A stretch of 64,000 bases of DNA from Blepharisma stoltei ATCC 30299 (Eukaryota > Protista > Ciliophora). The position numbers and the translations under genes are program-made. Each line of letters starts with the position of its first letter. Within the stretch, counting starts at the first letter, position 1. The stretch covers positions 781,980-845,979 of the forward strand of contig CBFDEM010000054.1 of assembly GCA_965603825.1 (NCBI GenBank), written 5' to 3'. Below the pieces are notes generated by a model. That model saw only the letters and a program-made list of their open reading frames with translations, searched no databases and was not told the DNA's origin. Positions 2,817 through 64,000 of the stretch are shown in pieces.

Positions 2817-2919
2817 TAAAATCATTGGAAAGTAAATTGAAACATTGGAATAATAATGAAGATAATGAATTGGAGAGAAATAAATAATTTTAAATATTGT
2901 AATTACCATTATAAAACTT

Positions 2920-3945
2920 ATGAGACATATAAAGATGACTGGGAAACTTGTATTTCTTCTGTCAGCGCTACTTATAATAGGGAATTTCGGTGTATCTGGC
3001 TGCTTAGATGTTCCAGGCCAAAATAACGAGGAATCTATTTTCAATTCAGACTCAAAGCTGACAGCACCACCTCCTATTTACCCAGTAAACCCTTCATGCG
3101 GCACGAGCTATGCACCTTTAGGCATTATGGCAGTCATTATCTTTATAATTTTATTTTTCTTGCCTTTATGGCTTGTTTGGGATATTTATCACGAAGATCC
3201 TGAAGATCAGAAAGGAAATATCATGTACGTTCCTCCTCCCCTTAAATCAAAAGCAGACAAAAAAGAACCCCGAGATTCAGGCAGAGCCCAAATTGATATC
3301 CTTGACGATAGTGTTAAATTTGAAGAAGAGCCTAGCAAAGTAATTGAGCCAGTCGCCGAAGCCAAATATCCAGAACTCCCTGTCGAAAAGCCCAGGAAAA
3401 AAAGAGAAAGAGGCAAACTAATTCAGCTGATAGAAAGCCACTTGCTGTTTGGGATGTTTTTTTATAGGCCAAGCTTTACCAGAGTTTTAAGAGCATTTAC
3501 TTTAATTACAGTCGTCATGTTTGAATTTATGCTTGAAGGGGCAATGTTGGAAGCCTTTGAAAATACAGACGTGGGCGAAGTAATGGATGCTTCAGATATA
3601 ATGAGCAATTATAAGAGAGAATATTTTGCTTATATGGTACTAGCTATTGTTATAGCCTCACCTGTGGAGTTTTATTTATCAGCAGCATTAAGCACCGATA
3701 GGTCTAATGGGATTTGCTGGGTGGTGTCTGCTATTATTTTTGGATTTTCTGTACTTATTGGGTCTATTGCAGGAATTATTGTATTATCGTTTCAATTTTG
3801 TTATGAATGGAGTGGGTATTGGTGCTTTAACTTTTTATTTGGAATTCTTATAGAAATTTTTATTATTCAAGCTGCGTATATGATTATAAGGTTTTTCAAA
3901 GAATGTATCCATTCTTTTATCAGGAGACACCGTCATAGAGCTTAA
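2920..3945 (+). CDS. Multi-pass membrane protein with signal peptide and a polycystin-1-like TM segment
   Basis: Hydrophobic N-terminus, about 5 TM helices; HLLFGMFFYRPSFTRVLR resembles the PKD1 HxWxS..FTRxQR motif. Confidence 0.6.
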   Translation: MRHIKMTGKLVFLLSALLIIGNFGVSGCLDVPGQNNEESIFNSDSKLTAPPPIYPVNPSCGTSYAPLGIMAVIIFIILFFLPLWLVWDIYHEDPEDQKGNIMYVPPPLKSKADKKEPRDSGRAQIDILDDSVKFEEEPSKVIEPVAEAKYPELPVEKPRKKRERGKLIQLIESHLLFGMFFYRPSFTRVLRAFTLITVVMFEFMLEGAMLEAFENTDVGEVMDASDIMSNYKREYFAYMVLAIVIASPVEFYLSAALSTDRSNGICWVVSAIIFGFSVLIGSIAGIIVLSFQFCYEWSGYWCFNFLFGILIEIFIIQAAYMIIRFFKECIHSFIRRHRHRA

Positions 3946-4451: not shown

Positions 4452-7334
4452 TTAATTAAGCCAATTATGTTGTCTTGCAACTCTATCAAAAGCTTCTTGA
4501 GCTTCTCCCAATGAATAATCAACATATGACTGATTCGGGTCCAGCTTAGCCCCTCCCTCCAACATATTAAATAAAATTTCAATAAAAATGCTCTCTACAG
4601 TTCTCACAGGAATCCACCCTGAAGGCGTCAAAGATTGCATACAAATAGACCCTCCGATCGTGACATGTCCAGTATGAAAAGCAAATCTTGGCCTCACAAT
4701 TCTTACAAAAGGAGGATTGAAAGGGAAATTTGCATCAAATCTGACCTCAAATAGAATTTCTTTTTCTCTGCCATAGCGCTTAGAATAGGCTTCAAATTCT
4801 TTCTGAAGGTCTTTTGGGATCTCAAATTGAGTAACATTAAGATGCACTTGCCATATATACATATTAGATCCTCCTTCAAATTCAGGAACTAAGCCTTTGC
4901 ATTCTTTGGATTTTAACAAATAGCGGTATTCTTGAAGGATCCTTTTATTTGATGTGGCAGATCCTTGCCCAGAAAACGCTTTTTCGATTTTTTTAATTTT
5001 TTCTTCAGCCTCTATGTCTTTTTGATTTTCATCAGCCCTTTGGACTTGAGGGGATTTTTGCTCCTCGAACATTTTTTGTGACCGATTCTCGGTTTGTGCT
5101 TTTTGCAAGGATTTTCTGATTGCTTCGTCAATGCGAGCTTTGCGGATTGATGCCTTTTTGGCTGCGAATGCTTTTTCAAACTTCTTTAAATGGTCTGTAA
5201 GCTCTAGATCGTTGGCATTAGCGTTTAATTTGTTGTAGTCGCTGGAGTTTCAGAGAAGTAGGTATCGGATAATCAGTTCTTTGTCGTTTTGGATTACGTA
5301 CACACCTCTGCCTGTATTGTAGTTTTTGTTGTTTTTAATAACTTCTATAATTGCCATGCAGCCAGTTGGAGGATTATGAAGGATGCCATAAGGCCAAATA
5401 GAACCTCCATCAGACATCCTTGAGTAGCCTAAAGATGTCCCCATATTTTCTGCACTATAAACTCCAGGCCCCGCAGCAGCCCCTGCAGTCATCATATGAG
5501 TATTACTAAGATTTCTGATCCCATTTCTTAAAATTGAGTACCAATTTTCTATAGCACTCCCATGAAAAGCAAAAAATGAGCCATGTTTTTGCTTAAGCCT
5601 ATTAAATTCCCTTTCAGCTTCAGGTGAATGGTTAGTCACAATATATTGCTGGATTCCCTCATCTAGTTTTTTAATTTTCCATTCTCCATCAAGTCTCACT
5701 AACGCTAGCCTATTAGTAGCAATAATATATCTAAGTAGTTTATAAGTCATCATAGAATTTTCTCCTATAAGAGTCGCCAAATAATCCCTCAAAGCCAGTT
5801 CATCTGAGCATTGGTCTTTCAGCATATGAGGGTTAGGCATCGACCTAAGAATTACTCTTAAATATTCAATGTCTTTATTATTGTCCATTTCTGATGTATA
5901 TTTTTGTCCTCCAGTTCTTGACAAGAATCCTGCCTTTCCTCTCATCTGCTCTTTTTTTAGCAAAAAACTAGGAAATGGTTCAAATACAGTTTGGGCTCGT
6001 GCTGAAGCTGCAGCTTCTGAGGCAAAGGAGAGGTCTAGCATTATTAAATTTATATTGTTTTTAAGCTCAGCGTATATAGAAAGCCCAGAAATTTCTTCAA
6101 ATCTAAATTCGCAGATCTCTTGGTTACAAGCGCGAAGCCTAATGGAGTCACAGTTATGCTTTTTATAGCAGATAAAGCAGTAATTCGTACAGTTTTGGAT
6201 GCGATCTCTCATATAGAATAGCATATTGTAAAAGAAGTTGTTGCAAGGGATGATAGCTTCAGCGAATTCTCCTCTATAGCTGCTAAAAACACCTGTATTA
6301 GCAATATCTAAAGCAGCGTCTAAGTCATTTTGAGAAAGCTGTAGCGCTTCTGTGGCCAGATCTTTAGGGAAACCCATAGTGACCATCTGCTTTACTAGAT
6401 TTTTATTGGCCGTTGTTTTATATTTTGCATTTTCTATACTATTTTCTCTAGACAAAGAAAGTGCTGAGCTTCCGCCTTTGCTTTTCATTGCATTATAAAC
6501 ATCGTCTCTATATTTTCTAACTCTTCCCAATATATATTCTCTGCAGCCATAAGAGTCCATTGACCCTCCTTGTAGAACCTCAAAGTTTAATGATCCTAAA
6601 AGAGCAGGAGTCCATTGTATTTCGTCCAAAGTCTGAATAATCCTATTATCGTTTATAGTAATACTTATGACTAAAGGAGACTCGTAGGTTAATTCTAGCA
6701 TAATCATAACACTGTCTGGGATATCCAAAAATGCCAAATCAATTTCTAGCCGAATATTGCTTAAGACCGGATTGTTGGTGATTTTACAGGAGTGGCGGAG
6801 GTCTGGGCAACTGTTAAAAGTCTCGTTTAAGAGTTCTACTGCTTCTGCAGCCTCTCTGAAGATAAAGTGGTTTTGAGCGAATTCAGGAAGACCTTGGAAA
6901 CTGGCGTCACTTTTTCCAGTTCTTTGAGCTGTTTTTACTAATCTTTCGTTTTCAGCTTCTATTATTTCATCATGGTAGTCTAAGTCCATTTCAGTATCAG
7001 AACCAAAGTCATTATCTGAGGCGAATTCTTTGTATTCTGAGTATTTATTGATTATTTTATCTAAAAACTTAGAAATCTGCATATCACCAGTAAGCAAATC
7101 ACTTGCACAATCTTGCAGAGTTTGGCTTGCCCATTCTATTCAGGATTTGATAGCAGAATTCTTAGAGCTTGAAGAAATCTCGAAATCTTCAAAATTAATT
7201 TTGATATATTGCTCGTCTAGTAGGAAATTTAGTCGTAAATTTTCAGCAGATTCAAAAGTTACAGGATAACTCAATGCTTCTCCGTTTTCTTCAAGCCAAG
7301 TGAAGAAAGACGTCATTAGGATATCATCATCCAT
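4452..7334 (-). CDS. 960-aa UBA + PARP6/8-like mono-ADP-ribosyltransferase + UBE2Q-like E2 fusion protein
   Basis: Three ORFs joined in frame through TGA at 7140 and 5250; UBA (MGFPKDLATEAL..NDLDAALD), Cys/His cluster, FHGS..NWYSILRNG, GPGVY, then PFNPPFVR..GHVTIGGSICMQSL..SGW. Confidence 0.9.
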
Positions 7335-7565
7335 TTTTTATAACTTCTATTTTATTAAATATATGTCTCTGCAATATCTAGGAATCTAAATCAATTAAAT
7401 TCTTTAAGAACGCATTTTCACTATTTCAGACCATTTCTAAGAACAAGATCTATTAAGTTTAATAAGTTAATGAAAAATAACGTAATTTAAAGGTATTATG
7501 TATTAATACTACGTTAATTTTCAAATAACTAAGATATTTATTATTAATATTGGCTAACATACTAA

Positions 7566-10500
7566 TTATTTACGATTAAGATTTTTTATACGTTCCTTCA
7601 CATCATTGATCGACACAGACTGATCTTCAGAAGACCCTGACTTGCTCAGCAAAGTATTCACCTTCGCTTTTAAGTCCGTCAGTGTAGTGCTCGTCTGGAC
7701 AGGCTGGTTATTTGAAAGTCCATATCTCTGCTTCATAAGTGCCAGCCTATTCTGGAAATCCTGGAAATTATAGCTTTCTGATGGAGGAGCATGCTCACTT
7801 TTTTCAGCTTTGCCTTCTTCTCTTAGTGCCCGCAAATCCTCAGCAATTTGGTTGGAAAGAGTCTTTGGGAGCTGGCTTAAAAGTGCTGAAAAATCAGTTT
7901 TCGAGTCTTTTTCTGTAAAATCAAAAAATTCTTTTATGGCTTGTGGGTAGGCAGATGGGTCATTTAATCTTGAAAGAATTGAGGAAAGGATAGGATCGTT
8001 GAACATTTTATTTTGTCTTGGAGACTGGGCGACCAAAGGCTTATTGGAGCTTGAAAGAATCATATTGATCCATCTTTCTATATTATTATCTGGCTCAGGG
8101 TGTTTTCTGACAGCCTCATACGACTGCCAGATATTTTCACCTTTTAGCTTTACAAGCTCATTTATGATAGTTTTTATCGTCTTAGTCCCCATTTCGTCTG
8201 AAGCTGGTGAAGCTCCACTCGTTGACCTATGTGTAATCAAATATTCATGCATCGCCAATAGTAATTCCTCAACTTGAATATTCTGCACAATATTTCCCAG
8301 AACTTTTGTCAATTTCAACAGACATCTGATTATCAAGCCAGGAATTTTAGGACATAAATCGTCATTTATATATCTCGTCAGCAGCTTTATTAATACCACA
8401 AACACTTGTGTAGGCTTTCCGTTTTCTAGAATTCTCAACATAGCGCCATTAAGAGTTTTTAGCATTGCTTCACCTTCTCCTTTTTCTCCGATTTTGTCTA
8501 AATCGTCTATAAGAAGTCTTTTTAAGATTTGTTCGGATAATTGGTATAAGGAGTTATCAGATAGCCGGATCATAATAGGTTTGGTGCAGCACATCTTTAT
8601 TACCACGCTTAAGAAGTATTTGGCGAACCTTAACGGGATAGTTTCAACTGGCCTCTCAAAAGTGCTGACCATTACTTTGCATAGAGCTTCAGTTAGAATA
8701 TTTGCTTTGTATTGGAGCTCTACCATATGAGATTCTTGCTCATTAATCATATAGTCATTTATAGCTACCAATGAGTCTACACGTGAACTCATATCTCCAT
8801 GCTTCAGGGTCTGTATATGATTATCTAGCTCGGTCAGGATTTCTGGCTCTGGCGCAGTCTCTTCTTCAATTACTTTTGCTTTGACTATTTCTGCTTTGTT
8901 TTCTATCTTTTCTACTACCTTTTGCCTTGGGATAATTTTTTCCTCAATTTTTGCCTCTTCGCCTACCTCTTCAGTTTCTATGAAAACCTGCACATCATTG
9001 TTTTGTGTAAAATTAGGAAATACAATTTCTTCTGGCTTTATAGTAATATTCGGCGAATTTGGCTTAAAATTGTTGTTTTCTTCTTCATTTTTTCTATATT
9101 TACTGTTATTTAGGGAGGTTCCTGAGATCACTTTGAATCTCTGTTCTAATAGATCTCTGACTTTGTCTGGGATGTCTCCTATGAGATTTCACACCTTGTC
9201 TCTGGTGTATTTATAGACTTCTCCGATAGTTCCAACAGCTGAGAGCCTTACATTGTTGTCTGGGCTGTTTACAAACTTCGCTATAGCTCTTATGTCTCTT
9301 GGCTGGGCTATGTTGGTGCCATATTCTTGAATAAGGCTTGATAATTCGTCAAGACACTCAACTTTGCTTCTGGTGTTTTTGGAATTAAGCCCTTGAAGAA
9401 CAGATAGAAACACTTTCTCAGGAGGATAAATTTTTGCTACATTGTGAATAATACTTCTCGTCATCGTCCTGAAAACTGCGTTATTATGTCCTGATTTTTC
9501 ACACAAAATTGGTAAAAATAGTGAGGCTTCTCCATCACTAAGTACAAATCCTTCAACTTGAAGCATGGACACTATTTGTATCGACAGTTCTAATATTGAC
9601 TTATATAGCTGCGTATTTGTTGTCTCAAAAAGTCTTACCCAAATGTATTTAAATATTAAATCTACCAGCTCAACCATTTCTTTTGGCTGTGTGTTTACCA
9701 AATTTGAGATATATTGGCATGCTTCAATCTGTTTTTTAAATTCAGAAGAAAACATCAAAGAGAACAAGTCAGCTGAAAAATTATTTTTTATTTGTTCCCT
9801 GAGCTTTTCCACAAACTCTTCTCTCAAATCATCGACTGTTCATTTATTTTTCAAATCTTGTTCAAGTCTTTTTTCTTTGTTTCCACTGCTCAGTACTGAA
9901 AAGTCTTGTGAAGGTATAAGATCGCCTCTTGAAGGACTTTTAGGAGGCTCCGCTTCAGCTGGTTTTGGATTTAGCTTTAAACGTGTGGGACGTGAATTTG
10001 CTTTTGAAGCCTTAGAAGCTTTTGAATTCGCTTGAGGCTCTATTTGAGGGGCCTCTGATATCACAACTGCAGGAGTTGTCCTATATTTATCCAAAATCAA
10101 GCACAAACTATTCATTACCGCCGGCTTCAGGTCTTTTAAGCATGGCTGGAATGCTTCCATTCCTATATAATTAATAACTTCTGCAAACAGCAGCTCAGTC
10201 GCATTTCTAATACTTGCGCTTCTATCTTGTAAACATGAAATTATTCCTGGGATCAGCAGCTTTAAGTCGCATTTAGGCAAGTTTTCCTTGTGGGCCAAGA
10301 GTCAGTTTAGCAGCTCAGTTCTAAGCTCAGGGTTATCTAAAGTTAAAGGGGTTGCACTATGGTTTATGATGTCTTCAGGGCCAACTTCTTGTGCCCATTT
10401 ATCAATAGAAGCAAGGGCTTCTTGTCTTAGCAAACTGTTTTTGTCTGATAAATTGGACAAGACGTTAGGGATGATTGCTTTGGAATAGACTTTTGAGTCA

Positions 10501-13340
10501 TTCCCCATAGCTTGTGCAAGCTTAGAAACTAATGCTAAACTTTGTCTGACGAGGGATTTATTTGGGTCATTCAGTCTTTCTTTTATAGCTTTTATTAGCT
10601 GCTCAAGTCCTGCTGGCAGAATCCTCATTCCGCTTTGGTCTAAGGACGCTTCTACCGCTTCCAAGCCTTCTTTCCTGATTTTCCAATTGGTGTCGCTGAT
10701 TTTCTTTAGAATGGCTGGAGTAATTGACTGAGAAATATTTGCCCTAGGAAAAGAAGCATCCAGCATTTTATTTGGGTCGATTTTGGACTCTTCTGAGCCT
10801 TTAATCTGCTTATAATTGGCTGTTTTTATGATTTCTGTCTTAGAAAAGTCTTCTTGTAAGACTTTCAGTGTGGCTTCTTTTATATCTGATATAAAAGGCA
10901 GGATTTTGTCCCCAATGTAACTGTAAATTTGGATAGTCAAGCTATGTGAAGCTTTTTTTATTATAGGGTTTGTTTGGCTTAGCCCAGATTTAGCATACTC
11001 AATGACTTCTTTTAAATTTACTGTATGAGCCCCGAATTCTCCTATAATTTTTCCTATAACAATGCAGCACTCTGAAACAACTTTAGGCTTATTGCAGTCA
11101 GATGTATTTTTTACAATCTGCCCTATCACAAATTTAGGCCCAAGGTCTTCACATAATGCTGATATACAAGTACTCAAGCTTTCTACAAGTTTATTATCAG
11201 AAAATTTATCCAATGCTAAAGAATTCAGTGCTATAACTCCTGACCTTTTTGTTATATTACAATTTTGTGCCAAATATGTTATCAATTCAAATGCTGCTTT
11301 ATTGACATTAAAATTATTTTCTTTTCAATCTTTTACAGTGCTTTTAATAAATCTTGATAAAGCTTCGTTGTTTTCTGATGCTACTGGAATGTTTGTAGAG
11401 GCCCATTCTTGAAGCAGCTGCAGGCCGCTTTGCTTTTCTTTCCAGGCGCTGTCTTTTAGTTTGGTAAATACCTCAGTAGGAATAAGGCTAGAAATAACAG
11501 TTTCAGCGTCTTCTGCTGAAATGGCTGTTCCTAATTCTTCTTCTCCTGATGGGGCTGATGGATTGTTTGTGGCCTGTCTTTGCAAAGCTGGGACAGGCTG
11601 GTTTTTAGGTTTACTCGCCGCTTTTGTAGGAGGCGGACTCTTTTCTCTTGGCTTTGGCTCATTTTCTTCACTGTTAGCAAACTTCGTGTCCCCAGCCTCC
11701 TCAAGCTTTTTCATTTTCGCAGGCGGCAAATCCCTAATAATTGGATTTATCACGTCAGGACACTTAATTAGTAGCGTATTCAGTACCTTAAATGAGGTGT
11801 TTCTCACCTCTAATGCACTATCATCTAAATTTTTCTTAAAAATAACTGCAATTCTGCTCGCTATTCTATTAACGACTTCATTAGGCTGTGTTGAAAAAAT
11901 CTTTTCAAGCCAAATCGATGCATTTATTTTTACTGATGGCGTCTTGTCTTCAAGCGCTTCTTTTATATCATCAAGGACCTGCTCCAAGCTGACACTATAT
12001 AAAAGATTGTCGAGCCCTATATGGGCTTCTTGTATTACCTGCGGCTTCTTGTCTTTGAATTTCATTATCATCATTGGGAAAAACTGCTTCGCAAAGCTAT
12101 CGAAATATTTTCGCTGGCCTTTGGCGAGCAAGCCTATAAGTCTCATAGCTTGGACCATCACATTTATATTGCTGTCGTTAAACAGCCTTTTCGCAAGTGT
12201 TGTAAGGGCAATAGGACTTTTTTCAGCAAGTTTAGGATAGTTTAGATCATTATTGAGCTCTTCGAGAGCGTTCTTTTTGTCGATCCATTTTTCCATTGCA
12301 AGCACAGACTCTGTTCATCTTTCATTATACTTGTTGAACACATCCTTTGCATCTGCCATGTCATAAATATCTATTGCAGGAGCAGGAGCTCTAGTACTGC
12401 TAGGTTTAGATTCCTCAATTTTAGGCTCTTGTCCCGCCATGTATCTGATTGGAATTGGAGGGTCAATGATATCTTCAAAGGCTTTTTCTAGCTCATCTTT
12501 TTGAGCTTTTTTAAGCTTTTCAACGCTAGACTTGATAAGTTCACGGACCCATCTATATGTTTCTTTATAAAAGTTTAGAGCTTCTCCTCTTACTTGGGCA
12601 TTGCTGACTGAAGCAAATTTTTCGATAATATCAATAAAAGGCTTATGAGAAAATGCTTTTACCCCAAAATTATTTATAAGCAAATTCACAGCAGAAATAG
12701 CTGCTGCTTGGATTTTGATATTTTTGTTATTTAAAGCTCCAATTAGTCCTTGAATGAATTTTTCTGTGTTATTGTTGTTATGTAAAGCATAGAAGTCAAG
12801 AAGGAAATTAGAGGATTTTTGTTTGATTTGCTGCTTGGCTGAGCTTAGTGCTTTTTCAATGAGGGTTCTCACTATTGTCTCGCTTTGAGAAATAATAAGA
12901 TCTGGTCGAGATGTATTATATACTGATAATATTTCTAATGCATTTTCCTGTACTCCTACATGTGAATCAGAAATAAATTTTGCCAGTTTGTCAGCATACT
13001 CTTCAAATGGAGGATCTGGGCTGTTTTTCAATAAATTCATTAATTCCTCAATAGCTTTCATTCTTGAATTTCATGATTTCGATTCCAATCTATCACTAAG
13101 CGGCCCGGTTTCCTCTTCTTTAGTCTCTTCTTCCTTAGGGAATTCTTCTAGAGAGAAGTTATAAGCTCCAGTCCCTCCTAAAGGTTTTTCATTTTGATCT
13201 TTAAATTGAATATCATCACTTGAAATATTATATGTTGAAGCGCCCTTCAGGGGAATTTCATCTATTGGTATAGAGCCAGCAAAATCTGATGAAATGCTGC
13301 GATTCTTGCTGCCAGATATGGGAATTTCGTCGTAAGACAT
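7566..13340 (-). CDS. CKAP5: XMAP215/ch-TOG microtubule polymerase, 1924 aa
   Basis: Seven in-frame ORFs separated only by TGA at 13071, 12315, 11325, 10302, 9840 and 9189; HEAT/TOG motifs SKSWNSR, KWIDKK, AWKEK, NWKIRKEGLE, FKKQIEA. Confidence 0.93.
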
Positions 13341-25100: not shown

Positions 25101-26591
25101 CTAAATCTGATTCGGCTCCTCTTCATCGCTCTCAAGTTGCCGTATCATGACTCCAGTAAACTCTTCAAAATCTATTTCACCATCTCCATTCACATCAGCA
25201 GCTTTCAGCATTTTGGTAAAATCCCCATAATTATACTCATCTCCTCCTAGCCTCTGTCACAGCTCTTCCAATGAAATTTTCCCATTCCTGTCCATATCAA
25301 AAGCTTGAAACGCTTTATATAATTTATCTTTATTTAAAGCAGTTTTCCAATTAGTAGCTGCAGTCAGGAATTCTGTATAGCTTATTAAACCATTTTGGTC
25401 AATATCGCACTTTTGCATCAACTCATTAGCGTTCATGCTTTCGGTTTGGCTAAATTTAGATAGCCCATTGATAAGCTCTCCTTTAGACAGGGTTCCATCT
25501 TTATTGACATCCAGAGCTAAAAAAACTTCTCTTAAAACTCTTAGCTCTGTATTCGTCGCTATTTGTGACACTATAAAAGTCATCGTGGCTTTTTGTAGTT
25601 TGTTGTGGACGTTGAATAATTTTAAATTAGATAAAGACTCACTGGCTAATGAGATGTCTGGGACTGAATTATTCATTCTTGTTTTTATTCATTCGTGATC
25701 CAAGATATCTGTGATTTTAGGACGATACGCAGGAGATTTGTTAAGCATCCACCTTATCAGCTCTTTGGCTTCTTTTGAAACGTTACTTCAAACTGGTTTT
25801 TTGAAAGAAACTGGTTTGTTGCGGATTTTCTTATATAGTGATTTTTCGTCTTTGGCGTAAAATGGAGGTAGGCCGGATAGCATGATGTAGAGGATAATTC
25901 CAAGGCTTCATACGTCACATTGCATGTCATAGCTACCAGAAATGACTTCTGGGGCCATATAATAGGAAGTTCCAATCATTTTTGAAAGTTTTGAGTGAGG
26001 CTTCAAAAAGTGAGAAGTTCCAAAGTCAATGAGCTTAAGTTTTGCATCAGGACTTTTATTTTCCAATAAAATATTTTCTGGCTTCAAATCTCTGTGCACA
26101 ATTCCAGAAGCATGGCAATATTTTACAGCTGAAACTATTTCAAACATATATTTTGCAGCCTGATTTTCTGAAAAAGACCTGCTTTTCCTTATTTTATTAA
26201 AGAGTTCTCTTCCAGTGCACAGCTCCATAACAATATTCAAATACAAGTCATCTTGGTACACCTCAAAAACTTTGACAATGTTAGGGTGATCTAATTTCTT
26301 CAGTATATTTACTTCTTCTATTAATTTTTCAATATTCGTAGATTTAGAAGACTCTAAAAGAATAGTCTTTATTGCCCTTTCTTGGTTGGTCGTTTTATTC
26401 TTGCCTAGTTTTACTTCGCCAAACCCGCCTTGTCCTAGCGTGGACAATAGTTCATAGTCTTCAGTAATTTTTTTATGAATCAGCACAACAAAATTGCTTT
26501 GTTTTATAACGTATTCCTTCCTTGTTTTCCGCTTAACGAATTCTTGGGATAGTTTTTTGTTTGATTTTGACTTTGTAGAGCAACAGCCCAT
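25101..26591 (-). CDS. Calcium-dependent protein kinase (kinase + 4 EF hands), catalytic motifs intact, 496 aa
   Basis: MGCC acylation start, GQGGFG, AIK, HRDLKPEN, DFG, APE, DV[TGA]SLG, four EF hands, TAG at 25101-25103. Confidence 0.92.
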
Positions 26592-26670: not shown

Positions 26671-28167
26671 TTAAATTCGATTTGGTTCGCTTTCCTCTTT
26701 CTCTGACAGTTTATTTAGCATAAGCTCAGCAAATTCATCAAAATCGATTTCTCCGTCTCCATTAATGTCTGCTTCTTTGAGAATTTTTATAAAATCATAG
26801 TGGTTTCTTTCATTTCCTCCTAAAGACTCTTTTAAGTCGTCCAGCGATATTTTTCCATTGTTATCATTATCATAAATTTTAAAAACGTTGTAAAGCTTTT
26901 CTTTATTTAAACTTTTCCTCCAATCCATAGCTGCAGTCAAAAACTCTGTGTATTCTATATACCCATTGTTGTCTAAGTCACACTTCGCCATTAGCTCGTG
27001 GAGGTCCATCTTTATCACCTGATGGACTTTTTTAAAGCCTTTTTTCAGCTCCTCTTCACTTAGTTTTCCATCTCCATTTTCATCAAGTGACTGAAAAATC
27101 GACCTAAGCTGGGCTATTTCGGCGTTAGTTGATAAATGTGAAACTATAAACGTCAATGTCGCTTTTTGGAGCTTATTGCTGATATTAAAAGCTGCTAAGT
27201 TAATTAAGGATCGGGATATCGTTGGACTATCTTCAGTGGCATTTTGGGATTTTTGCTTAATCCATTCATGTTCTAAAATTTCGTCAATGCTAGGCCGTTT
27301 TAAAGGTTTTTTATTTAGCATCCATTTTATAAGGTTTTTGGCTTCTTTTGATATGCTATCCCAAGCTGGGTCTTTGAAAGAAATAGGCTTTTCTTGGATT
27401 TTTTCATATAAGGATCGCTCTGATTTAGCTTTGTACGGGACTAAGCCTGAGAGCATTATATATAAAAGGATGCCTAAGCTTCAGATATCACATTTATTGT
27501 CATAGCTGCCAGAAATCACTTCCGGAGCTGTGAAATAAGAAGTCCCAGTAAATTTTGTTAGCTTTTCATTTGGCTTTATAAATTGTGACTGTTTAAATCC
27601 AACCAATTTTAGCTTTGCGTCTGGACTATCATTTTCAAATAATATATTTTCAGGCCTTAAATCTCCATGGACCACACCAACTGAATGGCAATGATTAACA
27701 GCAGATAAGATTTCTTTCATAAATTTGGCAGCTTGAATTTCAGAAAAATATAGCATTTGGCCCATTTTTTCAAACAGCTCTCCTCCTAAGCACAGTTCTG
27801 TGACTATATGTAAATACAGTTGATCATGATAAACCTCATATACTTTAATTATATTTGGATGATCTAGTTTCTTCAGTACTTCAACCTCTTCTAATAGCTT
27901 ATCAATATCATGACTATCTTTGGTCCCAAGAAGAATAGACTTTACAGCTCTTTGTGCCCCAGTTTTTTTTTCCGTTCCTAATCTCACTTCATAAAACCCA
28001 CCGTCCCATAGTGTTTTGCCAAGCTCATAATTTTTTATGATTTTTTCTTCATGGAATTTGACAAAATCTTTAGCTTTTATGCTGATTTCTCCTTTTGATT
28101 TTCGTCTTAATCGGGAATTTTCTGGTTTTTTAACATCTTCTTCATTACTGCTACTACAGCAGCCCAT
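26671..28167 (-). CDS. CDPK-like probable pseudokinase with 4 EF hands, 498 aa
   Basis: MGCC start; Gly loop WDGGFY, HGDLRPEN, DFG replaced by GFK; DI[TGA]SLG joins the two ORFs. Confidence 0.88.
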
Positions 28168-28468
28168 ATTTTAATAATAAATCAATGATCAAATTTTTAG
28201 AATAAATTAATGAATTATTAAATTTTATTAAGAGATAAGAGCTTTTTAAGATTAAATTCTTTTATGCCATTTTCCGAATTTTTTAATATTATTAAGATCT
28301 GTTTATTGCTAATAGAAACTCTAAATGGTGTCTGAAATGGAAAATTGGACTATACCTTCTTACTACAGCAAATCTGTTATGAAGTTTTAGCTGAGTTTTC
28401 TGGCTACTTGTTTTAGTTGACCCTATTTCTGATGAAGGAGTTTTATCAATCTGCGCAAAATCAAGCCC
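27370..28468. repeat. Left copy of a ~1.1 kb direct segmental duplication (partner 33081-34180)
   Basis: Collinear high similarity across the CDPK 5' half, the divergent intergenic region and the LRR gene start. Confidence 0.9.
28325..28468 (+). pseudogene. Truncated, frameshifted 5' fragment of the LRR gene at 34038
   Basis: atggtgtctgaa..gaaaattggact matches 34038; small insertion; similarity ends at tcaagccc. Confidence 0.85.
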
Positions 28469-28965
28469 TGATCAAATTGATGCATCCTGTAGGTCACTTT
28501 GCCACAAGACATGAAACAATTTACAACTATAAGCAACGAAATTATGCAAGAAGAGCAGCTAGTTAACACTGGATTTCAGGAGTGGTATGCTCTTCAAGCG
28601 TATCAGTTAAACAACTGCTTATGAGAAGCACTTTAGCATCTCTAATTTATTTATCTAGGAGATTAGGAAAGGCGTATCTAAAAATTATCACTTATAATTA
28701 TGAACCTGCAAACGAGTTGCTTTCCAAAGGTGCAAATGCCAGTCGTGCATCATATTCAATTGAATATACTGGAATAGTCATCCAAATTCCGAGTTCATCC
28801 TTTTTTTAGATCGCTAAAATCGATTCCTTATGGTACTATTGACAATAAATCACTATATATTTATATCCAATAGTTTTATTCTTAAAATTAATAATAGATT
28901 TGGCTTAGAATTTGCATCTATGTGCTTGTTATGTAATTATTCATAGTCTTACTTATGCACGTTAT

Positions 28966-31900
28966 GTGAAGGGGAGTCGGGGTGTGGGGAGTGCCGGATC
29001 CCGATTATGCTTGGCCAAACCTTTTATAAAACCCAGAAATAGATCATAGTCATCAAGATAAAGAGCTCAACAAATTGTAAAGTCTTCATTTTTCATTCAA
29101 ATTACCATGGTAAACTCATTTAAGTTTTTGTGTCAAGCAAGTGATTTTAGGAAAATTGATAGATATTATCTTTTTTAAGGTTCAGAAAATTTTCAAGATG
29201 TATTAAATTAAAATTTCTTAAAAATAATCACTATAATTTAACTCAAATTATTAATTATAAAGGCTTTGACTATTAAAAATCGTATTTAATTAAAATTAGT
29301 AAAGCCCCATTTTATAAAAATGAATTTATTAGAAAGTCTGCACGCTTCAATTTCAAGTTTGAACCTAAATCAGGAATGTCCCTCTAAAATAGATTGCGCA
29401 ACTTCTAGCGGCATTAGTGATACGCTTGAATTACTTTACAATCGAAATATTCATGTATTAGACCTAGATGCTCATATTAGAAAATCTCCCGCCTTATTTG
29501 AACAATCTAATGTTGCGTTATTTTTAATATGAAATATAAAGGAACTCATACAAGCTGATGGAGGAGAACTTAAAAGGCCTATTGTTGCATTTTGGAAAAT
29601 ACAAAATACTGAGTTTCCAGAGCCTTCTAATTCAGAAACTCCAGATAATTCAGCTTGACATAATCTTGTGATTCTTCCCAAAAACCATGCACTAATTAAT
29701 GGGTGTTCGCTTGGAAATGAGCTAGAATTAATTTTTTCGATTGACTTATCAGGGAAAAAATTGCGTTTACCTACAATATTAAAATATTTGCTTAAAAGGG
29801 AGATTCAGTATTGAAATAATTTTGAAAAATGTACACTAGGGGGATTTTTTCCAAATTCTGATATCCATGATGAGTGTGATATTAAGATGTATGAGAATTT
29901 TTGCGAAAGTGGAATATGATGCTTATTCAACACTATAATGCTCATATCAAATGGAAATATTGCTTTCGCTGAAAATTTTAGAGAGTATGATCCCACTAAA
30001 AGCAGAAAATTAGGAGCTATTTTACAGAATTATGGAGTTGATTTATGCAAAAATCCAAACAATATTATATGCGAGGATTATCTAGAAAAAAACTGAATTT
30101 ATGATTTCACTATTGCAGTTTATGAAGGTTTGTTAAATGAAGTTTTAGAATGAGAAAAGCTAAGAAATAGCAAAGATATTGATTTAGAATGTCTTAATAT
30201 TAACCAACTCTGCACGCTTAATATGTTTAAAAAATCAAATTCATGGGAACTTGCCATCCAATTTATTAAAAATTGTGGAAACGCCGAGAACGAAATTAGA
30301 ATCAAAACTCCAACTAGTCACAAAAAGATTAAAAGACGTGTTAAGTCACCTAAAATACACCAATCTGCATTAAAAATCAAGGGAGAATATGAATATAAAT
30401 TCTCTCGAAGCACAATTGATCTTAAAGGTTTGGTTGATAGAAAAAATATTTTTATTGACAAAACGTTATTCATAAAAGAAATCTTAAATGATGGGTCTGA
30501 AGCAATTATGTTTACCCGGCCGCGTAGATGAGGGAAAACTTTTAATATGCATATGCTAAAGACATTTTTGCATCCAGATCAAAATGCTGATGGAAGCTTC
30601 AAAAACTTATATGTGTTTACTGGAGGGCATGATAACGTTGACCTTGAAAATCTGGATGAAACCAGATGCTTAAATATAATGACTGTAGATAATGGAAAAT
30701 ATAGAGAGTATGCTGGCACAATCCCAACAATTTTTTTAACTTTTAGTCATATCTCGGAACCAACTAAGCATGAAAAGTCAGAGTTTGATTATTATCTTAG
30801 AGGAATAAAAAATGCTATTCATTCAGCATACTGAAGCTGCAAAGAAATATATTGCCAATACTTATTAAGATTAGTTCGAAATTATTACACATACATATTA
30901 AGGACTGAATGTGATATTGAAATTCCTGATAAACTCGTTTTAGAATCAAAAGTAATAGAATTAGAATTAGCTTTGCCCTTTTGACTTGTTCAGTTTACAC
31001 GTTTTATAAATCATCCAGATGAAATTGATTTAAATAATGCTTTAATATATTTAGTTACGTTATTTATTGAGTTTTACGGAACAAAACCTTATGTATTAAT
31101 AGATGAATATGATGGACCTATTAATAAAGTGATAAATATAGAAGTTAAAAGAGAAATATTAATTTGTATGAGAGCGATTTTCCAGCCAGTAATCAAAGAC
31201 GGAATTGCTAAAAAAGTTATTTTAACTGGAATTTATGAGATTGGAAAGACGGATATGCTATCAGGTTTAAATAGTTTGATATCATATACAATTCAAAATG
31301 ATACAAATTATGCTAATTGCTTTGGATTCACTGAATCAGAAGTAAGTGATTTGCTTGATAATATTTTATTCGCTGAAACAGAAGAGGATCTTATAGAGCA
31401 AAAAGAACTGATTAAGGAATGATATAATGGATATAACATTGGAATCCATAAAATTTACAATCCATGATCTATTATGAATTGTTTGGGAGCTGCTGCACAA
31501 AAAAGTCAGAATCCACTTCAACCTTATTGAATTAATTCAGGTGGTTTCAATCAATTAATTTTACTGTTTGATAAAGTTGAGAATTATGATAAATTATTTG
31601 AATTAATGAATACTGGATACCTTATATTCGAAGAGGAAATCGAAAACCAGATAGAACTAAATTATAATGAAAATGATAGTGATTACAATAAAAGCAATAC
31701 ATTTGATGATTTTTTAGCGATATTGCTCCATGCTGGATATTTGACAAAAGCTAGTGCTGATAAAGCAAATCCGAACTCTTATCGCTATATTATTCCTAAT
31801 AAGGAAGTTAAAAAGAGTTTTTATACATCATTACTTACATCTTGAATGAAGAAAAAAATGAGTCAAAATAAAATTGATAAAAGCAAGCCAATTGAATTTA

Positions 31901-33080
31901 TTCAATTTTTAGAAGATGGCAAATCACTCCAAAATCTCTTTCAAGAAAAAGTGCTTGATAAAATGAATGATTTTACTGATAAAACGGAGGAAGATTTTAA
32001 ACTGTTAATAGGGTCGATATTTAGAATAGCTTTACTTGAAATGAAATGCCCTACATACAAGATGCACGCAGAAAGTGCTAATGTGCACGAGAAAAAATTG
32101 GACCATATTTTTCTTCCTATCAAGAATGAAAGCTCTACAGTGATAATACACGAGTATAAAAAATTAGATTCAGCAAGTCATGAGCAAGCCCAAGAAAGGG
32201 TAGATGATGCGCTATGGCAAATTTATGCAAAAAAATATATGGAAATTGGTTTAAATTTATACGATGATATACATCATAAGCATTTTAAAAACTTTATTAT
32301 TCGAGGAATTGTGTTTTATAAGCTCGGCCTTGGAGATGTATGGAGTATCCTTATAAAGGAACATAAAATAACAGTTGATATGGCAAAAAAACTAAATTAT
32401 TTATTTAGCTCTCAAGATGGTGGAGTATTACCTAATCATTCGTTGTTAAGTGGAGAAAATTCCAATAGAGAGGCTAAAATTAATGCGAGAGGCACTCTAT
32501 GCAGCAGCCTAGACAGCTTAATAGAAAATATGCAAAGACTAGACTTTTTTAATCATTTAAATTATAAGAAGGCTGAAGAAATAGAAAATTGTAAAAGACA
32601 AAGAAACCCCGATCCAAATGAAATAGGGCATGAGAATAAAAGGAAAAGATAAAGAATGGTGTAAATAATATTTCTTAGAATAATTAACTGAATACATTAC
32701 TGTGCCATAATTTTCAAATACATCTGATTTTCTAATAATTAGGTTTTGCTTTAGTTAAGATTTAGTTTTATCTTTAAAATAAAATATTCATAAATTCGAT
32801 AATAAGTTTCTTAAGAGAAAACAAAATGTACGAAAAGTCAGGAAAATTGAAGAGGCAATGGATGATCCAAAATTTGAAAAATAGGCACTGTGGCTTGCCT
32901 GTTTAAGCTCAATAATTTTCACTTTGCTATATTCTCCATGAATTCAATGAACTAGGTCCTGGATTTCCACTATTCTAATCAGTCATCAAGTATTCAGTGC
33001 TTATGCTTAGCTTTTTCAGTTGGATAGCTTGCCTCATGGCCAAACATAAAACCCAGTCCTACCCCTTGCTCCCCCTCTCA
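28966..33080. mobile_element. Candidate mobile/effector element carrying an NTPase-nuclease gene, with imperfect terminal repeats
   Basis: G-rich left motif (28966-29036) and C-rich right motif (33036-33080) are related in inverted and direct orientation; the right motif abuts the duplication breakpoint; no DDE transposase seen. Confidence 0.45.
29320..32652 (+). CDS. 1110-aa protein: unknown N-domain + AAA-ATPase-like (PF09820-type) + PD-(D/E)XK nuclease (PDDEXK_9-type)
   Basis: One frame with 13 TGA=W; FIDKT, FTRPRR[W]GKT (Walker A), VLIDEYDGP (Walker B), LTGI..SGLN, FGFTESEV, WYNGY, IYNPWSI, AGYLT, IPNKEV, LDHIF..IIHEYK, ALWQI..KKY. Confidence 0.9.
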
Positions 33081-33878
33081 GTCTTTAAAAGAAATAGGCT
33101 TTTCTTGGATTTTTTCATATTAGGATTGCTCTGATTTAGCTTTGTACGGTACTCAGCAACAGAGCATTACATATAAAAGGATGCCTAAGCTTCAGATATC
33201 ACATTTATTGTCATAGCTACCAGAAATCACTTCCGGAACTGTGAAATAAGAATTCCCAGTAAATTTTGTTAGCTTTTCATTTGGCCCTTTTAATTGTGAC
33301 TGTTTAAGTCCGAACATTTTTAGCCTTGCGTCTGGACTATCTTTTTCAAATAAAATATTTTCAGGTCTTAAATCTCATTGGACCATACCAACTGAATGGC
33401 AATGATTAACAGCAGATAAGATTTCTTTCATAAATTTGCCAGCTTTATTTTCAGAAAAATATAACGCTTGGCCCACTTTTTCAAACAGCTCTCCTCCTGA
33501 GCACAGTTCTATGATATATGTAGATACAGTTGATCATAATAAACCTCATATATTTTAATTATATTTGGGTGATCTAGTTTCTTGAGTACTTCAACCTCTT
33601 CTAATAACTTATCAATAGAATGGCTATCTTTTGTCCCAAGAAGAATAGACTTTACAGCTCTTTGTGCCCCAGTTTTTTTTCCCCCGTTCCTAATCTCACT
33701 TCATAAAACCCAACATCCCACAGTGTTTTCCCAAGCTCATAATTTTTATGATTTTTTCTTCATGGAATTTGACAAAATCTTTAGCTTTTATGCTGATTTC
33801 TCCTTTTGATTTTCGTCTTAATCGGGAATTTTCTGTTTTTTTAGCATCTTCTTCATTATTGCTAGTACAGCAGCCCAT
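33081..33878 (-). pseudogene. Truncated, frameshifted copy of the CDPK-like gene at 26671-28167
   Basis: MGCCTSNNEED.. start; several indels; no EF-hand half. Confidence 0.9.
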
Positions 33879-34180
33879 ATTTTAAATATAAATCGATGAT
33901 TAAATTGTTAGAACAATCTAATGATTTATTTAAATTTTATTAAGAAATAAGAGCTTTTTAAGATTAAATTCTTTTTAGGCCATTTCCCGAATTTTTTAAT
34001 ATTAATAGGATCTGTTTATTACTAATAGAAACTCTAAATGGTGTCTGAAGTCGAAAATTGGACTTTACCTTCTCTACAGCAAATTTGTTATGAAGTTTTA
34101 GCTGAGTTTTCTGGCTACTTGTGTGAGGTTGACCCTATTTCTGATGAAGGAGTTTTATCAATTTGTGCAAAATCAACCCC
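33081..34180. repeat. Right copy of the ~1.1 kb direct segmental duplication
   Basis: Matches 27370-28468. Confidence 0.9.
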
Positions 34181-34874
34181 ATTCGGGCTTATAAATATTG
34201 AAGAATTGCTATCTCAAGGGGAAGTCGACCGATATATAGACACAAATGAGTTCTGGGAAAGACTATACAAAGAAAAGCTTCGCCAAGATCCTAAATATTT
34301 GATCCCTGAAAGGGAAATTCTGAAAGGGGAAGATTATTATAGGCAGGCCTATTTGGCATCTTACCTAAAAAATGAGCTTGAAAATAGGACGCTAGATGAC
34401 GAAGACTTAGAAAGATTTATCAACATGTGCTCAGGAAACCTTAAACTCGTTTCAATAGGAAGATTCGCTGGAGTTAACTTAGAATATTTATTGAGTTTAT
34501 TTCCCAAAGCACTTCATTTAAGCCTAAAAGACAGCAAAGTCGGCCCACAAGCTGGAGGAATTATAAGAAATTATATAGAAAGAAATAAATATTTACAAAC
34601 TTTGAATTTAAAAAGCTGTGAACTAGGAGATGCTGGGGCTGGAGAAATTGCACAAGCGATAGCGAAAACACGATCATTGAGAAGCCTTGACATGGCATTT
34701 AACGATATTTCGCTAGCTGGGGTCAGAACTCTATGTGAAGCTATTTTAGTTAATAATTCGCTTGGGATTATTGATTTATCAAGAAATATTTGGGGACCTA
34801 GAGAGCTGAAACCAGCTTCTAATCTAGCAAAACAGATGAAGCAAGCCAAAAACCTAATAATTAAAATTGTATAA
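34038..34874 (+). CDS. RNI-like leucine-rich repeat protein with a BC-box-like N-terminus
   Basis: LPSLQQICYEVL; repeats LQTLNLKSCELGDAGA, LRSLDMAFNDISLAG, IDLSRN. Confidence 0.8.
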   Translation: MVSEVENWTLPSLQQICYEVLAEFSGYLCEVDPISDEGVLSICAKSTPFGLINIEELLSQGEVDRYIDTNEFWERLYKEKLRQDPKYLIPEREILKGEDYYRQAYLASYLKNELENRTLDDEDLERFINMCSGNLKLVSIGRFAGVNLEYLLSLFPKALHLSLKDSKVGPQAGGIIRNYIERNKYLQTLNLKSCELGDAGAGEIAQAIAKTRSLRSLDMAFNDISLAGVRTLCEAILVNNSLGIIDLSRNIWGPRELKPASNLAKQMKQAKNLIIKIV

Positions 34875-34923: not shown

Positions 34924-35502
34924 ATGGTAGAGCCAGATCCACAATTCAAATTGGTTATACTTGGAAATTCAAATGTCGGCAAAACCTGCATCGTTCATAG
35001 ATTTGCCAATGAATCATTCTTAGAAGGATCTACTCCTACTATAGGTGCAAATTTTTTAACAAAACAAATGACACTATCAGATGGAAAAAGAATAAAACTC
35101 GAAGTTTGGGATACCGCAGGACAAGAAAGATATAAAAGTCTTACACCTATGTATTACAAAGGGTCTTCAGCAGCTCTTATTATATACGATATAACCCAGC
35201 CATCTACTTTAGAAGGAGCTAAGGATTGGATTAAAGAATTAAAAAACCATGGACCAGCAAATATTATAGTAGGACTAGTAGGAAACAAATTAGATTTAAA
35301 CAGAAATGTGTCAAAAGAAACTGGGATGGATACAGCACAAAGGAATATGTCATTATTTTTTGAGGTCTCTGCAAAAACTGGTGAAAATATTAGTGAAATG
35401 TTTCAGGAAATTGCAAATAGATTGCCTAAAGATCCACCCAGGAAGCGGCAAGCACTTAGCCAAGGAGAAGCGAAAAAAGAAACTTCGTCTTGCTGCAATT
35501 AA
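34924..35502 (+). CDS. Rab GTPase, Rab5/21/22-like
   Basis: GNSNVGKT, IGANF, WDTAGQERYKSLTPMYYKG, GNKLD, SAK, C-terminal CCN. Confidence 0.92.
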   Translation: MVEPDPQFKLVILGNSNVGKTCIVHRFANESFLEGSTPTIGANFLTKQMTLSDGKRIKLEVWDTAGQERYKSLTPMYYKGSSAALIIYDITQPSTLEGAKDWIKELKNHGPANIIVGLVGNKLDLNRNVSKETGMDTAQRNMSLFFEVSAKTGENISEMFQEIANRLPKDPPRKRQALSQGEAKKETSSCCN

Positions 35503-35704
35503 AAATGAAGAAAGATAAATATTAAAGTAATTTCTACAGACAATAAAAAATTAAATAAATATATAATTTTATATTTTACAATAAAAATAGCATTATATAA
35601 TTATAGAAATTGTCTGTTTCTTTATCCAAAAACAATAAATAGAGATTTAAATATTTAGCTAAATAAAATTGTGATAATTTCAGATCTAATTGTTTAAATA
35701 TATA

Positions 35705-36708
35705 CTATAAAAATCGTTTTTGGGCCCAGCTTGCGATTTTAGGTACTTCAACCCACCTACTTTCGTAAGATTTACATCCAAGAACAGTCACAATAAGCTG
35801 CGGATTCGAGCTATTTGTTCTTACACACAAGCACGGCCCAGCTTTAATTGTATGCCCTGTTTTAATCCCGTCAAATCCTTTTCCTAATAATTTATTTGTA
35901 GTTTTCCAAGTAATGCTTCTATTTCCATTTGGATTTTCAATTATACAACTGTAGCTTTGCGTATTTACAATTAAGCAAAAAAATTGATTTTTCAATGAAA
36001 ACGCAGCTAATTTACAAACATCTCTTACCGTAGAAAAATTTGGTTTAATAGACAGCCCGTGTGGGTTTTTAAAAACAGTGTTTTCTAAATTGAGCTCTTT
36101 TGCAAAATCATTCATACCTTTAACAAATTGCAATATTGGATTTCCTTCTTTTTTAAATCCTCCAAAATATTCTGCTAATGCAACAGCAGCGTCATTCCCT
36201 GACGGCAGCATCATTCCCTGACGGCAGCATCATTCCCTGACGGCAGCATCATAGCAAAAAATAGGTCTTTTAGCATGATTTCATCTTTTTCTCTTAAATT
36301 TGCTGATGTTCCTATTATATTTTCGGCCTTTTTACTAATGGTGATTTTATTGGAATAGCTTATATCAAGTTCTCCAGCAAGTTTTATGCTATAAATACAA
36401 GTCATTATTTTTGTAAGGCTGGCGATTTCTCTTTTTTCGTCAAGCTTAGAGCCGTATAGCATTTCTTTGGTTTGCGGATTGAAAATCCCTCAGGCTTTTG
36501 CAGAAATATAAGGTGGGATATGGTGAAGGGGTTTTGGGGTTGAATCTGTTGGAGAATTTTGCAGTAAATTTGGAAGGCACTTTTTGGGACTTGGGGTGAG
36601 GGCTCGGTATGATTGTGGGATTGTTCGTTGCTTTGAGCTGTTAAGGGCTGAAAATAAACTTAAATTTAAAGCGCTTAAGTCTTCAGGTTTAATCCTTCCT
36701 CATGCTCT
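35705..36708 (-). pseudogene. Peptidase S11 D-Ala-D-Ala carboxypeptidase-like gene, frameshifted by a tandem repeat; upstream region has stops
   Basis: ASLTK (SxxK), SGN (SxN), NPHGL, KTG; 38 extra nt at the SGN motif; in-frame TAG at 36709-36711 and no ATG-led open frame upstream. Confidence 0.7.
36192..36248. repeat. Three perfect tandem copies of the 19-mer tcattccctgacggcagca
   Basis: Copies at 36192, 36211 and 36230. Confidence 0.95.
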
Positions 36709-63900: not shown

Positions 63901-64000
63901 TAGGGTGTTAGGGTGTTAGGGTGTTAGGGTGTTAGGGGGGGTGTAGGGTGTTAGGGTGTTAGGGTGTAGGGTGTTAGGGTGTTAGGGTGTTAGGGTGTTA
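60925..64000 (+). repeat. Telomere (TGTTAGGG)n, about 384 units, G-rich strand running towards the end
   Basis: Near-perfect 8-nt tandem array; the complement CCCTAACA is the Stentor/Blepharisma telomere unit. Confidence 0.99.

Follow-up and report, generated by a model that had tools for sequence, protein, structure and literature searches.

A predicted ATPase-nuclease gene between kilobase-scale direct repeats of host DNA in the somatic genome of Blepharisma stoltei

The inserted gene and its flanking repeats

In the published somatic (macronuclear, MAC) genome of Blepharisma stoltei ATCC 30299 (PMC9942806), an intact gene for a protein with an AAA-ATPase-like domain and a predicted PD-(D/E)XK nuclease part is found exactly between two direct copies of a block of host DNA. 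The locus was analyzed in a window of 64 kb (C54:781980-845979), this being the whole stretch of DNA under study, and coordinates are positions in it unless another contig is named. The duplicated host block is referred to as A, with A1 on the left side (27374-28468) and A2 on the right side (33081-34180) of the insert. Each copy comprises the 5' part of a CDPK gene, a divergent promoter, and the 5' part of an LRR gene, and both align from end to end with ~92% identity, with all four borders sharp. The insert between A1 and A2 measures 4612 bp and holds one open reading frame (ORF), located on the forward strand at 29320-32652, which is intronless and encodes 1110 residues in genetic code 4, with 13 in-frame TGA codons (UGA = Trp). 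Long reading frames emerge in the window only if TGA is taken to code for an amino acid.

The genes that read outward from the repeats are intact. CDPK-B (26671-28170, reverse strand) shows Pfam matches to Pkinase and EF-hand, is open in code 4, and has an intact N terminus, with its 5' 800 bp lying within A1; the LRR gene, of the RNI type (34038-34874, forward strand), is recognized by an LRR_6 Pfam match and by its translation. On the inner side, a 144-bp fragment of the LRR 5' part (28325-28468, forward strand) is cut at the insert border and carries two frame changes with respect to the intact copy, and the CDPK 5' fragment (33081-33881, reverse strand) has decayed to a pseudogene that contains stops and needs three frame changes. 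This arrangement corresponds to the original prediction for this locus, which had described diverged direct repeats of a CDPK-5'/promoter/LRR-5' block, intact outward genes with truncated and decaying inward copies, and a long intact gene of the AAA-ATPase-like and PD-(D/E)XK type between them; frame changes and stops are indeed limited to the inner copies, and the assignment of the 1110-residue protein is supported by its PF09820 match, a family motif, and fold comparisons. What that prediction overlooked is the clan-CE-like head of the protein and the membership of the gene in a family of about 20 members that is already annotated.

Although assemblers can be misled by repeats of this length, an assembly artifact or a collapse of haplotypes is extremely improbable here. 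The left border of the insert is crossed without mismatch by contigs spanning 28421-28685 from two DNA runs of a second study (X5 and X6), and the right border by a contig of run X5 of that study (32948-33117), so that independent DNA runs support both junctions with exact contigs. Also, the two copies of A differ by 8% and by indels, and the reads show each variant separately. Moreover, run X12, from a second strain, carries the same arrangement, with the same gene at ~96% identity between the same repeats and a right insert border 86 bp shorter than in the reference, which places the event before the split of the two B. stoltei strains. X12 most likely corresponds to strain HT-IV, because a minor X12-like form is present in the probable RNA run X8, which would derive from mixed mating strains (PMC9942806).

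The strains are distinguished by a segment of 554 bp (28466-29019), bounded by the 2-bp CC at both ends, which is present in the reference strain and missing in X12. The joint 28465->29020 reaches a depth of 101 in X12 and of 3.6 in X8, and the minor short-form contig of X8 carries the X12 variant at 29071, which fits the presence of mixed mating strains in the library. This strain difference provides a hint, the only pointer in our data, bearing on the status of the insert as a germline-limited element or retained internal eliminated sequence. A separate observation within this segment is that one contig of run X6 opens with 18 unmatched letters ending in the telomere-like CCCTAAC just before position 28856, which may represent an alternative site of telomere addition or a chance event.

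Recurrence of the layout at other family loci

Assembly-wide searches, covering 41.46 Mb in 64 contigs, place about 20 diverged paralogues of the gene on contigs C22, C40, C27, C58, C62, C32, C10, and C14, with 28-44% amino acid identity in the C-terminal piece and most of them in tandem arrays. Eight further paralogue loci were compared for flanking repeats, a comparison that leaves out the 660-675 kb cluster of C40 and the second clusters on C58 and C22. The new observation is that the layout of host repeat, gene, and host repeat recurs at C10 and C62, with flanks that are unrelated between loci. At C10, repeats of ~1.75 kb and ~96% identity surround an insert of 3.5 kb that is essentially one family gene, frameshifted in this case, and at C62 (28-38 kb) repeats of 1.24 kb and 94.8% identity surround an insert of 4.1 kb with an intact gene; at neither of these loci is a remnant of a second gene copy found outside the repeats. 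Two variants of the layout are also present. C27 contains two tandem units of A plus gene, where A consists of 1.1 kb from the 3' end of a glutamine synthetase gene, its copies being 98% identical, and at C32 (C32:597500-607499) an intact gene is located inside inverted repeats of 0.5 kb (2835-3363 versus 6904-7393, 90-94%), with a partial gene copy at 9049-9856. At C27 (glutamine synthetase) and C62 (pinin-like), the flanking genes remain intact in their outer copies. Thus, the flanking duplications to which the original prediction had pointed as a check on the paralogues turned out to be clean at C10 and C62 and modified at C27 and C32. As for the remaining loci, C40 has a singleton without repeats, C22 and C58 have plain tandem arrays, and C14 has a truncated gene fragment without flanking host repeats.

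A comparison of the A blocks of C54, C10, C62, and C27 reveals no mutual similarity, indicating that they are local host DNA and not the long terminal repeats of an element. The spacing between the starts of the two A copies is 5157 bp at C54 (X12 form; 5711 bp in the reference), 5197 bp at C27, 5235-5323 bp at C10, and 5353 bp at C62, being near constant although the lengths of the repeats span 1.1-1.75 kb.

Composition of the insert

The insert at C54 is a patchwork and not a clean element. Its left part contains a multicopy piece of ~230 bp (28634-28866), ~82% identical to sequences on C16, where it forms an inverted pair, C11, and C33, and with a raised contig depth; it occurs in four unrelated places, none of them near a family gene. 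Rfam and tRNA scans of the region gave no match, so this piece is not a recognizable RNA gene or a tRNA-derived element. In the C16 segment (C16:320957-324190), the two inverted copies (911-1123 and 1501-1734) are ~380 bp apart and no clear ORF is seen. The stretch 29163-29750, which overlaps the start of the gene, is similar to a decayed fragment on C15. Downstream of the gene, a dead remnant of a channel gene of the PHM7_cyt/anoctamin type (OSCA/TMEM63-like; 32812-33037, forward strand) is 86% identical to the intact gene at C3:1860-2096, which is located 1.8 kb from the end of C3. Filler from elsewhere is also present at C27, as a piece from C27:677 kb.

The right border of the insert is flush with a C-rich motif (33025-33080) that is related, in both inverted and direct orientation, to a G-rich motif with a TGGCCA center on the left (28964-29036); their local alignment exceeds 300 of 300 shuffles (z ~5). 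This pair is unique in the genome and missing at the other paralogues. It was considered as a set of terminal inverted repeats common to the family, an idea rejected because it occurs at this locus only. A telomere fusion was discarded as well, given that the motifs differ from the TGTTAGGG repeat at the end of the window.

As originally predicted, the insert has no DDE transposase: its sole ORF is that of the ATPase-nuclease, and no other ORF or transposase gene is found in it. The ends that an element would be expected to share among its copies were not found. Between close paralogues, similarity does not reach further than ~10-600 bp beyond the ORF, and there are no common terminal repeats; for example, the similarity between C10 and C32 extends over 3.3 kb at 90.8% and ends near the ORF, and that between the C62 and C22 copies runs from ~600 bp upstream to ~100 bp downstream of it. 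The insert therefore differs from a cut-and-paste DNA transposon, since it lacks a transposase, shared terminal inverted repeats, and a short target-site duplication, the duplication being of 1.1 kb instead. Also, a search with the insert through the whole assembly detected no donor copy, with matches of at most 71% apart from short fragments.

The encoded protein

The code-4 translation of the ORF is identical to the public B. stoltei protein P0071, so the gene model is already annotated, and it is described, as its paralogues are, as an "AAA-ATPase-like domain-containing protein." Proteins with in-frame TGA codons were searched as TGA-free pieces or through P0071. The central part of P0071 (residues 369-646) matches PF09820 (AAA-ATPase_like) with 76.5 bits against a cut-off of 26.1, and paralogue L037 reaches 118 bits; a Walker A-like motif (RPRRWGKT) is located at residue 400 and a Walker B motif (VLIDEYD) at residue 592.

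The C-terminal part (residues ~900-1030, with HEYK at 944) is predicted to be a PD-(D/E)XK nuclease on the basis of the family motif, a weak PF08011 match in a paralogue, and fold comparisons. The E..D..ExK motif, followed by a conserved Q, is kept in an alignment of 15 family pieces except in L032 (E->G). For PF08011 (PDDEXK_9), no match above the threshold is obtained with the C-terminal piece of the window gene or with the full protein, and the best score in the family, that of a paralogue, is 16.3 bits against a cut-off of 25.5. A model of the C-terminal 268 residues (predicted local distance difference test, pLDDT, of 81) gives top Foldseek matches that are nearly all PD-(D/E)XK enzymes, with weak E-values from 8e-3, among them the nuclease domains of CidB/CinB, Cas4, SwaI, EcoRV, and MGME1. 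The tail of the protein is basic (KRKR) and resembles a nuclear signal, giving the protein a nuclear look.

For the N-terminal 340 residues no Pfam match of any kind is found, and neither the N-terminal pieces nor their profile match a Pfam peptidase, C48 or other, or a PDB sequence. The N-terminal model, obtained for paralogue L010, has a pLDDT of 58. Foldseek was undecided with this model, and an exhaustive VIA-align search gave clan-CE matches: the first 23 all belong to this clan, with Z values from 8.1 to 4.4, starting with OtDUB (Z 8.1) and continuing with SseL, ChlaDUB, RickCE, the deubiquitinase (DUB) domain of CidB, Ulp1, SENPs, and adenain. This low-confidence model suggests that the N-terminal part would adopt a clan-CE (Ulp1/DUB-like) fold. 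In the window protein, the corresponding head spans residues ~20-240 and includes PKNH at 120, IDLSG, and SGIWC at 197, and the conserved motifs of the family in this region, W-x-x-x-V-I-L-P-K-N-H, I-D-S-x-G, and E-S-G-L-W-C, the last at a helix start, fit a His/Asp/Cys order. The putative head resembles clan CE (Ulp1/SENP, bacterial effector DUBs, and the DUB domain of Wolbachia CidB) in its fold and in a compatible order of His, Asp, and Cys at the start of a helix, but it differs from clan-CE proteases because it has no peptidase Pfam match and because several paralogues have T, S, or L in place of the putative Cys, so that a protease activity would be doubtful for them; the canonical His-Trp position is not conserved either. 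An N-terminal header of the Crinkler or ubiquitin-like kind, as in Crinkler/RHS-type effectors, was not found, the region having no Pfam match and a predicted clan-CE fold instead. Searches of PDB sequences with both domain profiles returned nothing useful, and PADLOC gave no match for the full protein or its domains.

A contig of run X8 (3361 nt, 29345-32705) corresponds to the ORF plus ~50 nt and is collinear with the genome, which suggests an unspliced transcript; the gene is probably transcribed.

A fast-evolving family

The family is not mentioned in the paper on the Blepharisma MAC genome (PMC9942806), and PF09820 is also listed for RdrA of the RADAR system (PMC10952713). Bacterial DUF1703 proteins, in which PF09820 is combined with PF08011, are expanded in Cardinium, Rickettsia, and Simkania (PMC6387759). 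With them the Blepharisma family has in common an ATPase-nuclease core, with the E..D..ExK motif in the ciliate protein, and a multicopy set of highly diverged paralogues (~39% amino acid identity in Cardinium (PMC6387759) and 28-44% in Blepharisma). However, the Blepharisma gene resides in a ciliate nuclear genome and uses the host code with UGA as Trp, and its product adds an N-terminal part of ~340 residues, clan-CE-like in its model, and a basic C-terminal tail, whereas its PF08011 match stays below the Pfam threshold.

All three domains are common to the paralogues. Seven paralogue ORFs are intact (1036-1121 residues), and the ratio of nonsynonymous to synonymous substitution rates between close pairs is 0.53-0.66, which indicates proteins that are constrained but fast-evolving. 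In its ATPase part, one paralogue shares 30-39% identity with PF09820 proteins from bacteria and metagenomes. The profile of the N-terminal domain matches 131 cluster representatives, which include OTT_1508-type deaminase-domain proteins and fusions with ankyrin or ABC-type ATPase parts. Among them is also Aasi_0501 (P0084), a NACHT/ankyrin protein of 2526 residues from the amoeba endosymbiont Amoebophilus asiaticus, in which residues 299-567 match the ciliate domain with an E-value of 5e-31. These matches hint at an exchange between intracellular bacteria and protists.

Moreover, metagenome contigs encode proteins of ~1000 residues with the same N-terminal domain together with PF09820. On scaffold L056, two tandem homologues (10001-13027 and 6499-9591) code for 1008 and 1030 residues, both with PF09820, and have as neighbors a PH-domain gene and a gene for ribosomal S5/uS5 whose length of 270 residues is that of a eukaryote. 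This contig probably comes from another protist, in which case the family would not be confined to Blepharisma. Judging from the sequences, the intact ATPase and nuclease motifs, the basic tail, a head shared with effectors of intracellular bacteria, the lineage-specific expansion in arrays, and the fast evolution would fit a putative role in conflict, be it in immunity or as a selfish nuclease.

Genomic surroundings

A third A-like copy, of 66-74% identity, at 25786-26462 corresponds to a neighboring CDPK paralogue, and the other direct repeats of the window are plain head-to-tail gene pairs only. The gene that follows the LRR gene (~34940-35505, forward strand) encodes a Rab-type small GTPase, recognized by translation only. 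The last ~3 kb of the window (60927-64000) consist of the telomere repeat TGTTAGGG, so that the window reaches the chromosome end, from which the nuclease gene is ~28 kb away.

A paralogous segment of 17.5 kb on C52 (C52:592000-609500) is collinear with positions 18000-41600 of the window, sharing a kinase gene (~96% amino acid identity), a gene of 204 residues (~97%), and two CDPKs, and it continues with a homologue of 35693-36661 and further genes; its direct repeats are ordinary head-to-tail gene pairs only. This segment lacks the nuclease gene and was evaluated as an "empty site," but the LRR and Rab genes are missing as well, so it is not a clean one. Its gene content points to an ancient duplication, either segmental or of the whole genome, that was followed by differential loss.

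Origin of the duplication and insertion

Based on this layout, we lean toward an origin in which duplication and insertion took place in a single event of break repair, a mode that would be typical of the family. At C54, the sequence outside each copy of A continues as an intact gene and both inner ends of A directly abut the insert, so the ancestral state must have been L-A-R, with one A between its left and right neighbors. A later landing that strikes the junction exactly on three occasions is very unlikely, which argues that duplication and insertion arose together, and the flush borders with the recurrence at C10 and C62 bring out what the original prediction had proposed, namely an insertion accompanied by a kilobase-scale duplication of its target. 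In the route we propose, two chromosome copies, either sisters or members of a polyploid set, would have been broken or primed 1.1 kb apart and joined through a patchwork of copied DNA comprising a complete gene unit and filler from other loci, which would leave the host block on both sides of the insert. Having A on both sides, CDPK-B and the LRR gene each keep one working copy. Sharp junctions, filler of foreign origin, and the lack of defined ends point to a repair route, possibly template switching or end joining that involves two chromosome copies with breaks 1-2 kb from each other, and make a reaction of the transposase kind seem less likely. In a compact genome only events that spare both neighbors would survive, which explains the length of A. 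Moreover, the finding of the same layout at C10 and C62 with unrelated A blocks, and of its variants at C27 and C32, suggests that this would be the usual mode of dispersal of the family. The repeated choice of one gene family as cargo is not explained by repair alone, and the encoded nuclease may itself cause the breaks.

Several observations weigh against this scenario. Flanking repeats of host DNA are missing at three loci (the C40 singleton and the plain arrays of C22 and C58), and the specificity of the layout for this family rests on ~165 kb of control sequence. No donor is left, the nearest DNA relative covering only parts of the insert at 64-71% identity. Also, at every locus the identity between the flanking repeats (92-98%) exceeds that between the gene and its nearest paralogue (80-91% or less), which makes the repeats appear the younger of the two. 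This would mean either that the gene was moved and not copied, or that donors were lost, or that the flanks were homogenized by gene conversion. Finally, the RNA status of run X8, from which transcription was deduced, is a guess by the tool.

Template switching of the fork stalling and template switching/microhomology-mediated break-induced replication (FoSTeS/MMBIR) type, or end joining with templated filler, gives variants that combine a duplication with an insertion. Like these, the Blepharisma structures have sharp junctions, a patchwork of filler from other loci, and a duplication adjacent to the break; however, such events are normally random as to the inserted gene, and here the inserted gene comes from one and the same family at several independent loci. 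The topology of element and A copies on both sides, the direct duplication, and the position of the element exactly at the junction are also seen in the alternative (reversed-ends or sister-chromatid) transposition of maize Ac/Ds (PMC3744419). Nonetheless, Ac/Ds transposition involves element ends that are well defined, a transposase of the hAT type, and target duplications of 8 bp (PMC3744419), whereas no transposase, termini, or short duplications were found at the Blepharisma loci, where the junctions contain foreign filler.

A self-mobilizing cassette would attribute the insertion to the gene itself: its own ATPase-nuclease would break the target at staggered positions, 1-1.8 kb from each other, between which the gene unit would be inserted, implying target-site duplications of kilobase length without a transposase or terminal repeats. 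In line with this, there are three clean loci with unrelated targets, the catalytic motifs are intact, the insert of the C62/C22 subfamily is filled almost exactly by a conserved gene unit, and the lack of an extant donor would suit a cut-and-paste-like movement. On the other hand, the copies have no conserved ends, their inserts include filler of foreign origin, the paralogues are old and diverged (28-44% amino acid identity) and mostly in ordinary tandem arrays, and we are aware of no precedent for the mechanism, so we regard it as unlikely. At the same low level of confidence, this would be a new kind of mobile cassette, whose own ATPase-nuclease would cut the target open twice, at positions separated by 1-1.8 kb, or would act by way of a circle of ~5.2 kb. 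With either the cassette or the circle, a kilobase-long target duplication would always accompany the insertion and preserve both neighbors, which would suit an extremely compact genome, an idea we hold to be equally tentative.

Such a circle, of ~5.2-5.3 kb and consisting of the gene and one A, could have recombined homologously with the chromosomal A in a Campbell-type ("ends-in") integration. The near-constant spacing of the A copies despite their different lengths keeps a circular intermediate alive, and many excised DNA circles arise during ciliate development; yet a constant spacing cannot be claimed from four values, circles are without evidence here, and a prior step must have placed the host block in the circle, all of which makes this route quite improbable. 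Two unrelated events are to be considered too, with a partial tandem duplication of the CDPK/LRR region occurring first and the gene landing later in the resulting dead DNA, a safe harbor in a compact genome. Tandem duplications are common in the window and only insertions sparing the neighbors would survive, but the insert is within a few base pairs of the duplication junction at C54, C10, and C62, even though ~950 bp of dispensable DNA were on offer at C54, and the wrong side of the insert is free of any A sequence; we give this sequence of events very little credence. A tandem duplication of a unit of A plus gene followed by the clean loss of one gene is likewise unparsimonious for C54, C10, and C62, although it explains C27.

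Implications for Blepharisma and the family

The somatic genome of Blepharisma is so compact that almost any insertion would break a gene. The nuclease family has reached new sites at least three times, with duplication of 1.1-1.8 kb of the target and with both neighbors kept working. If the nuclease itself drives the insertion, the loci would represent a novel way for genes to move, accompanied by kilobase-long target duplications. If it does not, these loci would offer a clear natural case of break repair between chromosome copies that disperses a gene family harmlessly. Moreover, a protease- or DUB-like head of the kind found in effectors of intracellular bacteria would be combined with a bacterial-type ATPase-nuclease in one ciliate protein, and the family is expanded and fast-evolving in this ciliate, a pattern that would be expected of a conflict or immunity system.

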